Positions 30,701 to 34,435 of a DNA stretch of 64,000 bases are shown in pieces. Location of the stretch: contig CATNEN010000002.1 in the NCBI GenBank assembly GCA_950097015.1, positions 8,618,001 through 8,682,000 of the forward strand, given 5' to 3'. The translations under genes were made by a program, and so were the position numbers. The notes under the pieces were generated by a model. That model was not told the origin of the DNA, ran no database searches, and was given only the letters and a program-made list of their open reading frames with translations. Positions within the stretch are counted from its first letter, which is position 1. Every line of letters starts with the position of its first letter. The stretch comes from Macrostomum hystrix (Eukaryota; Animalia; Platyhelminthes).

Positions 30701-31682
30701 GCGGCCTCCTATTCTAACTTGACAAATGTTAGAAATCGCCCAATAAATCAGTAGCCGTAGTATACAAAGGGTAGTTTGCTGCCACCAGAAGCATAACATA
30801 ACTGCAGACACGACAAGAATAATCTAAAGCCAAATATTTATTTGGTTTATTTGGGAACGAAATTTGATAAACATATACCGCAGAACTATTGCTTCAAACA
30901 GATTATTATTATCAAGTGCAGAGCATTCTTAAAACTAAATAAAACAATTTAAAATTAGAATTGAGATAGGAGAATACGCATTAAGGGAGCTGGAGCACCA
31001 GTGGAGGGCACAAGGTAGGAGCCCTGTTGCACAGGTCGTAGAGAAATAAAATCAATAGAAGCAGTTTAATTTAATGATAAAATATCGAGGGCTTACGTAC
31101 GTAGGCTTAATTAGCAACACCTAAACACAGAACACACAGAGGAACTGCAATCATGTTCATGAAATACAAGTGCATATGATCCAGTAAATGTATTGGTAAC
31201 AATAAACTACTAGTAAATTTTAGATTCTCCAAGAAATCATTAGCAATGACTGCTGAAGCGGGTGCTTAATCCCAATCCGAACTTATAATTTCGTTTATAT
31301 CAGTTGTATCTAAAACGCATCCTAATATCACATTATCAATAAAAACCGCCGTTATAGTAACATAAAATTGTTGGCGTGCCGACTCAATTTTGTACTTTAA
31401 TTTAAGCAGCAATTAGACAGGCCCACTGCTAACTCATGTGCCATTTTTGGCTTCATGGCTAGTGGAGAGTGAGTTACCATTCGCGGCATATTAATAAAAA
31501 TTAAAACAAAATAACAGAAACTAACAATTATGAGTGGATAAAAGAATAGGAATTTAATAAAAATGGGAGAATAAAAATTAACAAAGTTAAAAGAAACAAA
31601 AAATCGCGTTTTCGAGCCGCAAGTGTCCGCTCCCCTATCATGGGAGTTAGCTAAGTCATAAATAATTGATATTGTCACGTAG

Positions 31683-33345
31683 TCACTGCTCGACTGAGTC
31701 AGTAACGCTATCAGAGTCAGTCGATGAGTTGCTAACGATTTCAATTTTTTGCTGGTTCCCACTTCTCGCCTGAATTTGAATCTGACGGGTCGAAAGGTTG
31801 TCATTCTCCGGATCGGAATCAGCCGACGGAGACTCGTCAAAATTTGATGTCAAGTCTAGTGAGCCACTTTCGTCATCATTTTCGATAATAATGGGATCGT
31901 CATCGCTTGGTGAAACTTCGGACGAAACGTTGCTATTCTGCTGCAAAATTAGTTGCGGCTGATTCAATACTTCGTTACCCCGTGGTGGCTCAGTCGATAA
32001 TTCGCATTGAATAAATTCAGCCAGCTCTTGCATTGTAACAGATTTTCCTCTAAGCTTTTTCATCGCGGCCTCAGTAGACATCATCAGGTGCCCGATGCTT
32101 TTGCCTTTGTCGTTATTGTACTGATAAGTCCTGTACCCAGGTAGGCTGCCAAAAATGGCAAAGTACCAGCCTCTGGAAGGGAGTATAAAACTGCCATCCG
32201 AGCCACTTTTGGGTGTGGAGTCTAGTTTTGGAGCCTCGTTTCTGAATATCAAGCCTCTGCTGCTTCTGGGGCTTCCAGTGATTATCTCTCGGTCCCCTGC
32301 AAGCGTCCACAAAGAATACCTTCTCTCTGTCGCACAAAATTTCGAAGAAGCTTTTCAAAAGATCATCCAAGCAGGTAAAACCATCCTCATAGGTGTCAAC
32401 TCCATGATCATCGCCGTGCGCCGTGAGAAAGACCCATATTATTTCATTTTTTCCCGGTTCCAACTTTTCCTTTATGAAATTGCAATTCTTTATCACTTCT
32501 TCTCTCGCAGATTCCGATGTCCAACTTTCTTCGCGAATTATGGATAAACGTCTCTCCTTATCGATGCCCAGCAAGGAGCAAATTGATTTGAAACTGTCAG
32601 CATCGCCTTCAGCTTCCTTTCCAAGAAGATTTATGAGCAATGCAAAATTGTCGCTGGATTTCTTACAACTAGGTACTTCAGTTTCAGGACGTGCTAGGTG
32701 CTCACTAATTATGCCCTTCGGCAGGCCAACCTTGAGAGGGTGGATTCCGGCAGCCATTAAATTCTTGTCCAAAAGTTTTTCTTCAAAGTGAGAACAAATT
32801 GCACTTGCCGAAACAGCCTTCAAAGTGTCAAAAAATGACTTGAAGTCACTTTCACTAAGGCAGGAATGTAGGTCGTATTTATAAAGCATAACCCCTTTCA
32901 GTTCTGGCAACATAATTTCTCCCTCTCTTCGAGAATCCTTGGTGTCGATGTCAATCGGTTGCTTTCCCTCGTTGATATCGAAGTAGATAGCAAATAAAAA
33001 CACGTGGATATCAGGTCTTTCAGCATTGCCTTCAGCCGACTCTCGTCGAAATGGAGCGAGCAGATTGAACTCGAGAACGAATTTGTTTCCAAGTACTGGC
33101 AGTTCTCCATCCTTTTTACTCACCCAAAGTACAACAAAGAAGTACAGCTCGGCTGCTTCAGCGCTCCTGCGAACCGCATCAACAACAAACTGCTTGTACT
33201 CCTCATACGACGAGCAAGTGACGGGCTCCACTGGTTGAACAGTGCCAGCAGTTGTTGTACTCTTCTGGACCATCGAAACCAACCACGTGCTGGGTGTTAT
33301 TGTTGCGACTTCAGTTGACTTTTGTGGTACGAAAAGGTCGCCCAT
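31683..33345 (-). CDS. Intronless caspase-fold protein with one frameshift between p20- and p10-like halves (about 550 aa if repaired)
   Basis: The p20-like half has FALLIN...GDADSF..LLG, FLTAHG and KVFFVDACRG in ORF 32113-33354. The p10-like half has LPSRGWYFAIFGSLPGYRTY...GKS..QPQ in ORF 31683-32312, a different frame. The switch is most likely at or just after the C4 run 32294-32297. The ATG at 33345 is preceded by tacag-c. Confidence 0.75.
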
Positions 33346-33769
33346 GCTGTACAATAATACGAGCTATTTCTCAGAGCGGGCCTGAATTTCTCGCTAGGCG
33401 TACAGAATTCACTCTCGCGCAGCTGACTTATATAGGCAGTGCGAGTGAAACAATGGTCGTTTCGTTTCCTTCTGCCTGCATGGCAGCTAAGAAGACCATG
33501 GAGTCACACAACATTTTATCCTGGGCTGCGTTCTTGCTTGCAGGTTGCAGCCCAGTTGAGGCTCAGGCCTGGCCTTGCTCGCAGGGTGAGCGGGAGAGAG
33601 GGAACGTGAGGAGTGGCCTGGCTGGCAGTTCCTTTCTCACATTTAGTACTCTTTAAGCCACCTAGCTTCTGACTTTTAAGCATGAAGTTAAAAGAGTATA
33701 AGTTATTAATCATGCCTCCCTTTCCACTAGCATGCAGTCTGGAAAAGTGCCTATTCAAACACACAGTAT

Positions 33770-34435
33770 TTTCTAGTCAAAATGGCTACGAGCTTTCGGT
33801 CCTTTCCAGTTTGGCAAGAATGCAAGTTTCTGCCTGGCACATGCCAATAAGATAAGATAAATCATAGAGAACAAAAACTTCAAGGTAGAAGCTGGCCTCT
33901 GTGCCATGCAGTGAGACAACAAATAATGGTCGGACCATTGACTCATTGAGCGAACCGAAATCATATAAAAAAGCAATATCATAACGACTTGGTGGGGGAA
34001 GGTTGTGAATGAATTTTGTACATGTATTATTAAAGAAAATCTTTCGATTTTAGCATTTCGCGTGATGCAAATCACATAATTTTACGAAAAAAAAATACAG
34101 TTTTGTCTCATTGGCTTTGTATACGACGAGTATAGAAACATTGCGAACTACGAGACCGAAAATTCAGTATATGAATAGATTATGTAGTACTCGTAAGTGC
34201 AAAACAGAAGTTGAAAACGAGTTCTACTTCCTTTTTAAGTGCAGTTGGAATATGTATAGCGCCGCACGTTCGAATTTTGAGAAGAAAATTTCTGGAAAAA
34301 CTCCCAATTTCACATCCTTATCAGCAGAAGAGAAATCTACCTACATAATGGCACAATACGATAGGGAAAACACTGAAGCTTTAGCAAAGTACATCATAGA
34401 AATCTCTGAAAGAAGGGAACAGCTGGCCTGAGACT
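33770..34435 (+). mobile_element. 3' remnant of a CR1/L2-group LINE ORF2
   Basis: SIETLR...RLC..KCK.EVENEFYFLFKC..Y...R resembles the IETGR..C..C..vEdE.Hfll.C..Y...R C-terminal zinc knuckle. Confidence 0.65.

Follow-up and report, generated by a model that had tools for sequence, protein, structure and literature searches.

The window, a 64,000-nt stretch of the Macrostomum hystrix genome, carries a divergent caspase-like gene on its minus strand, over which the ORF listing places two overlapping open reading frames (32113..33354 and 31683..32312). The start codon was assigned to the ATG at 33343..33345, the earliest in-frame ATG past an in-frame stop that lies seven codons 5' of it in the translated upstream region; the N-terminal alignment of the ortholog from M. 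lignano begins at the same position (33345). A TATA-like box (TATATAA, 33428..33434, minus strand) is located 83-89 nt 5' of the ATG and may act as a promoter element. The first reading frame encodes an N-terminal domain (aa 1-231, 32653..33345, minus strand), conserved in all four known family members, followed by a p20-like, or large-subunit, part (aa 232-355, 32281..32652, minus strand) that carries the TAHG and DACRG motifs. At 32280 (minus strand) both protein and DNA alignments show the conserved frame moving by +1. Frame 1 itself continues out of frame for 55 unrelated codons and ends with TAA at 32113-32115 (32113..32280, minus strand). The +1 frame holds a p10-like, or small-subunit, part with GLIFRN, FGSLPGY and GHLMMS motifs (31998..32279, minus strand) and an acidic, Ser/Thr-rich and probably disordered tail that closes with TGA at 31683-31685 (31683..31997, minus strand). 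A putative 3' UTR (31396..31558, minus strand) contains two hexamers resembling poly(A) signals, both ATTAAA, at 31553-31558 and 31396-31401.

All strings quoted in an earlier, sequence-only reading of this DNA were found on the minus strand. Numbered from the ATG at 33345, these are YFFVVLW (aa 68-74, 33124-33144), PDIHVFLFAIY (aa 111-121, 32983-33015), TAHG with the putative catalytic His (aa 308-311, 32413-32424) and DACRG with the putative catalytic Cys (aa 347-351, 32293-32307), the Asp of the latter occupying the position of caspase Gln283. That reading had placed a p10-like segment and an acidic tail on the same chain. Both elements exist, but they lie in the +1 frame and not in that of DACRG, as illustrated by the p10-like stretch YFAIFGSLPGYRTYQ at 32121-32165 on the minus strand. 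The tail comprises 103 aa, with 21% D+E, 4% K+R and a net charge of -18, and aligns with the tail of the M. lignano ortholog. A single intact protein of about 553 aa over 33345-31683, as previously envisaged, is not encoded, since two ORFs are present and a +1 change at 32280 would be needed to join them. No single uninterrupted frame through p20, linker and p10 occurs in the window gene, and 31683-33345 should not be annotated as one protein. The predicted product is 410 aa long, consisting of 355 native and 55 unrelated residues, and lacks the p10. Both the window gene and its ortholog (1,773 nt for 590 aa) are intronless.

The position of the break is well defined by comparison with the ortholog. 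Frame 1 matches the 590-aa M. lignano protein through ...FVDACRG-RDN (49% identity, E 3e-103), the frame-1 codons past 32280 (32113..32280) show no similarity to the ortholog in that frame, and the +1 frame matches from TGSPR / ...SPR-SRGL to the C-terminus (47% identity, E 4e-47). The jump falls between AAT (Asn355, 32281-32283) and ACT (32277-32279), three codons after CRG, at the position of the caspase inter-subunit linker. The DNA alignment leaves the window with 14 nt fewer than the ortholog between GAGAGATAA and TCAC; in this two-species comparison the 14 nt may have been lost in M. hystrix or gained in M. lignano, the frame being kept in M. lignano alone. Contigs of four sequencing runs cross 32280 and are free of differences, gaps and joints there; X2 is a DNA run with a depth of ~80, and X3, X5 and X6 belong to a separate 2020 study. 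Given the agreement of these four runs, which come from two studies, and the lack of a homopolymer run at the site, we rejected an assembly or homopolymer error and conclude that the frame change at 32280 is genuine. A small intron restoring the frame was likewise rejected, given the lack of joints, the intronless ortholog and the absence of any GT..AG pair of plausible length there. No RNA edit or indel at 32280 is visible in the run contigs that span the site.

The family to which this gene belongs is small. The M. lignano ortholog, PAA69563.1 (P0001, 590 aa), is the sole close relative in 5.8 billion proteins, and it alone was returned by word searches with either the window piece or the family alignment. 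An exhaustive profile search covering 1.84 billion representatives yielded three clusters only, each with a single 90% member, and added two proteins of the same architecture: PAA66687.1 (P0003), encoded by a second M. lignano gene, and P0002, from a transcript contig of run SRR30276804. Together with the window gene, this brings the known members to four, two of them from M. lignano and one a transcript contig, and the family has so far been seen only in M. lignano, in M. hystrix and in that contig. When P0002, P0003 and the N-domain profile were searched against the M. hystrix genome, no further copies were detected, so that the window locus is the only copy found, and the 3' UTR of P0002 has no match in this genome. 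P0002 and P0003 share a C-terminal VSQTHVV[IV]R motif that is absent from the window gene and P0001. The literature searched contains no description of a DACRG caspase or of the known family members, and a lophotrochozoan caspase survey makes no mention of a DACRG family; the M. lignano members already bear automatic 'caspase domain' names.

In its C-terminal half, the family has a caspase fold in which the His/Cys dyad is intact. Comparison of the family C-domain profile with five canonical caspases of M. hystrix using hhalign gave a probability of 95.7% (E 8.7e-9), with AHG falling on AHG and DACRG on QACRG. Against the PDB, the same profile retrieved only caspases among the 60 matches listed (caspase-1, -7 and -3, from E 5.5e-4), with paracaspases and metacaspases absent from these 60. 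Structural models cover the full-length ortholog and the N-terminal domain alone (pLDDT 45-47), and the window protein as a whole is not among them. For the intact ortholog, the AF2 model has a pLDDT of 45.5 overall and ~60-70 in the C-domain; despite this low confidence, Foldseek matched it to caspase-3, -7 and -8 with E 2.8e-7 and a probability of 1.00. The aligned range (residues 238-483) spans p20 and p10 and includes the p10-like region. The caspase-fold half proposed in the sequence-only reading is borne out in its fold and dyad motifs by profile, hhalign and Foldseek comparisons. Single-sequence PDB matches of P0001 to GldL and of the P0003 C-domain to thrombin were judged spurious. With Pfam PF00656, the window ORF (18.9 bits) and P0001 (16.5-18.0 bits) score below the cut-off of 21.4 bits, which is passed by P0003 (37.8 bits) and P0002 (22.7 bits); the window gene is not among the 84 PF00656 matches of the M. 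hystrix genome.

Animal caspases (C14A; caspase-3, -7, -8, -1 and CED-3) are accordingly the best sequence-profile and fold matches of the C-domain. They share with it the caspase-hemoglobinase fold, the p20- and p10-like parts, xAHG and xACRG motifs at matching spacing and PG[YF] in the p10. In contrast to animal caspases, the family has a ~230-aa alpha/beta N-domain in place of a CARD or DED, together with a ~100-aa acidic tail, and the window copy is both below the Pfam cut-off and frameshifted. The family also differs in its presumed substrate pocket. Caspases are defined by strict Asp specificity, with Arg179, Gln283 and Arg341 (caspase-1 numbering) forming the S1 pocket. We aligned the family with the canonical caspases of M. 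hystrix, which contain R-x-G-[ST]-x-x-D, QACRG and A-Y-R. All four family members carry Asp at the position of Gln283, giving a D-x-C motif. Five residues past the Gly of the PG motif, where caspases have Arg341, the window gene has Gln, P0001 Glu, P0003 Asn and P0002 Leu. The Arg179-bearing loop of caspases, which follows strand 1, is ~8 residues shorter here and contains Gly, Lys and Glu, with no Arg (window gene and P0001). The substitution of Gln283 by Asp and the lack of Arg at positions 179 and 341, noted earlier from the window alone, thus recur in the family alignments, by which all three residues that confer Asp specificity on caspases are replaced in the protease domain.

Intact members would, on these grounds, most likely cut after a residue other than Asp. 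The D-x-C motif, present in four of four family members, resembles that of paracaspases and metacaspases, and on this analogy P1 is probably Arg or Lys; the Asp of D-x-C has a known specificity role in MALT1 and metacaspases. Pocket positions other than D-x-C are not conserved as acidic, the variable Arg341 position (Gln, Glu, Asn or Leu) setting the family apart from paracaspases and metacaspases. The CRG that follows the Cys is a further likeness to caspases and not to paracaspases or metacaspases, and the family, unlike MALT1 paracaspases, has neither death nor Ig domains. An animal lineage of caspase origin with Asp at position 283 and neither S1 arginine would illustrate how Asp specificity can be rewired within Metazoa.

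The N-terminal domain proved more difficult to classify. It contains 19 columns that are invariant across the family, with 19-47% identity to the window copy, and is predicted to be alpha/beta as opposed to all-alpha (AF2 pLDDT 47.5). It has no Pfam or PDB sequence match. The absence of death and Ig domains noted previously holds in a Pfam search of residues 1-240 and the tail, in which no domain of any kind was found at E values up to 10. Foldseek comparison of the N-domain model with the PDB returned nothing significant (best E 0.08, TM 0.25 or lower), and an Atlas shape search gave TM values of 0.35 or lower, with no caspase row. When aligned by hhalign, the N-domain matched neither the family's own C-domain significantly (E 0.36) nor canonical caspases (probability 0.6%). 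The sole alignment between N- and C-domains nevertheless sets ELYFFVVLW... on the strand of the His motif, in topological register. A VIA-wide Foldseek search with the N-domain model also gave no significant match; eight of its 50 best rows are caspase-family chains, aligned over residues 15-208, and these eight are not mutually independent. The nearest neighbours of an ESM Atlas model of ortholog residues 1-235 include CHAT (TM 0.46) and caspase-8 (TM 0.48). Language-model neighbours of the P0001 and P0003 N-domains are Peptidase_C14 clusters, with scores of 0.85-0.87 that fall below the 0.9 threshold for a lead. We consider the odds that this domain has a caspase-like fold to be roughly even, and those of its serving as a pseudo-dimer partner to be well below even. 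A conserved, unclassified N-terminal domain would represent a new kind of pro-domain.

Transcription of the locus was assessed from the coverage by the 2020 runs. X3, X5 and X6 each comprise only ~47-50 Mb of contigs. Their contigs cover the gene (31369-33501 in X3), and all three runs leave 33650-34105 uncovered. Judged from this patchy, gene-shaped coverage, the runs are probably RNA-Seq and the gene is probably transcribed. As an X3 contig extends upstream to 33501, the true transcript start may lie 5' of TATATAA. On the 3' side, X5 contigs reach 31484 and X3 contigs 31369, which is ~27 nt beyond the second ATTAAA. About 500 nt 3' of the gene, contigs from all three 2020 runs also cover a separate block (30857-31176), which represents either an exon of an adjacent transcript or an extended 3' UTR. 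Just 5' of the gene, short high-copy repeats occur at 33545-33636 and 34135-34189; in the DNA run their summed contig depths are 885 and 3330, up from ~80, and loose ends and variant letters are numerous. The M. hystrix assembly derives from the inbred line SR1 (F ~0.998; PMC10468722, which also mentions RNA data from individual worms), and this line was likewise used for RNA-Seq of M. hystrix in a 2020 study (PMC7336406). If the 2020 runs correspond to this published SR1 RNA-Seq, their agreement confirms the base call, though not that the lesion is fixed in the species.

The region downstream of the break retains the properties of a coding sequence. The +1 frame is open for 198 codons, a length equalled in 0 of 20,000 shuffles. 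The dN/dS ratio against the M. lignano ortholog (NG86) is 0.446 upstream and 0.451 downstream of the break, and amino-acid identity in the coding alignment used for this calculation is 52% and 54%, respectively. The downstream part was therefore constrained to the same degree as the upstream part for nearly all of the time since the two species split. Because the downstream frame is still open and its constraint equals that of the upstream part, the lesion is, judged from the alignments, recent. Separately, third-position identity to the ortholog was found to be 0.63 downstream of the break compared with 0.54 upstream, and nucleotide identity to the ortholog (L004:7093-7215) around the active-site codons (32221-32322, minus strand) is strikingly high. 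Runs such as TTTGTGGACGCTTGC are invariant between orthologs that are only ~50% identical as proteins.

We interpret the locus as a single-copy, divergent gene of caspase origin with a replaced S1 pocket, which was recently frameshifted and probably inactivated and is apparently still transcribed, and assign this reading a probability of about three in four. The family, small and flatworm-restricted, is fast-evolving and caspase-derived, with an intact architecture, represented by M. lignano, in which a ~230-aa alpha/beta N-domain precedes a caspase-fold protease and a long, acidic, disordered tail. In M. hystrix, the 14-nt length difference in the inter-subunit linker shifts the frame, such that the mRNA can encode only the N-domain, the p20-like part and 55 unrelated residues. 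The p10 provides caspases with needed strands and with substrate-binding loops. Lacking it, the product of the window gene is most likely inactive as a protease, although a truncated N-domain plus p20 protein could keep a non-proteolytic role.

A more far-reaching version would take the intact members as an undescribed animal caspase lineage that combines an Arg/Lys S1 pocket with an internal, degenerate caspase duplicate as dimer partner, the M. hystrix copy being freshly inactivated; taken as a whole, we regard this as unlikely. Less likely still is that the 410-aa truncated product constitutes the functional form, for example as a non-catalytic regulator or decoy akin to short caspase-like inhibitors. 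In its favour, all 355 codons ahead of the break are intact as well as conserved, and the locus seems to be transcribed. An intronless gene may, moreover, escape mRNA decay that depends on introns. However, the downstream dN/dS equals that upstream and the downstream part is free of stops, which fits a very recent loss better, and the profile search of 1.84 billion representatives contains no family member with a short architecture.

The proposal of the sequence-only reading, an intact single-chain tandem of pseudo-caspase and active caspase that cuts after basic residues, with the N-domain as a dimer-like protomer, appears distinctly improbable. The D-x-C motif and the loss of both S1 arginines on which it drew are real, and the hints of a caspase-like N-domain (Atlas, language-model and VIA-wide neighbours and the hhalign register) are weak but mutually consistent. 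Against this, the gene is frameshifted in M. hystrix and hence not intact, the eight VIA-wide caspase rows are not independent, and a pTM of 0.39 is too low for domain packing to be judged. Separase combines a pseudo-protease with an active protease domain and cFLIP is an inactive caspase paralog; the family differs from both in showing no sequence similarity to either and no significant evidence of a pseudo-protease fold in its N-domain. Restoration of a full-length protease by programmed +1 frameshifting, RNA editing or rare splicing is very improbable, for although the downstream frame is fully open, neither a homopolymer nor an in-frame stop nor a known slippery motif occurs at GAT AAT C ACT, the ortholog is in frame without any such event and all run contigs are colinear across the site (contigs do drop rare variants).

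In the sequenced inbred line the reading frame is disrupted, and the intact M. lignano genes are those to use in functional studies. The family's interest for protease evolution, and for the large expansion of caspases in Macrostomum, is moderate. In the M. hystrix genome (220 Mb), at least 84 matches to Peptidase_C14 exceed the Pfam cut-off, which amounts to a large caspase expansion. Many of these loci consist of one exon with an open frame of 260-600 aa and a canonical QACRG, and several are arranged in tandem, with clusters on contigs C1 (22.73-22.75 Mb), C38 (8.74-8.78 Mb) and C29 (4.81-4.83 Mb).
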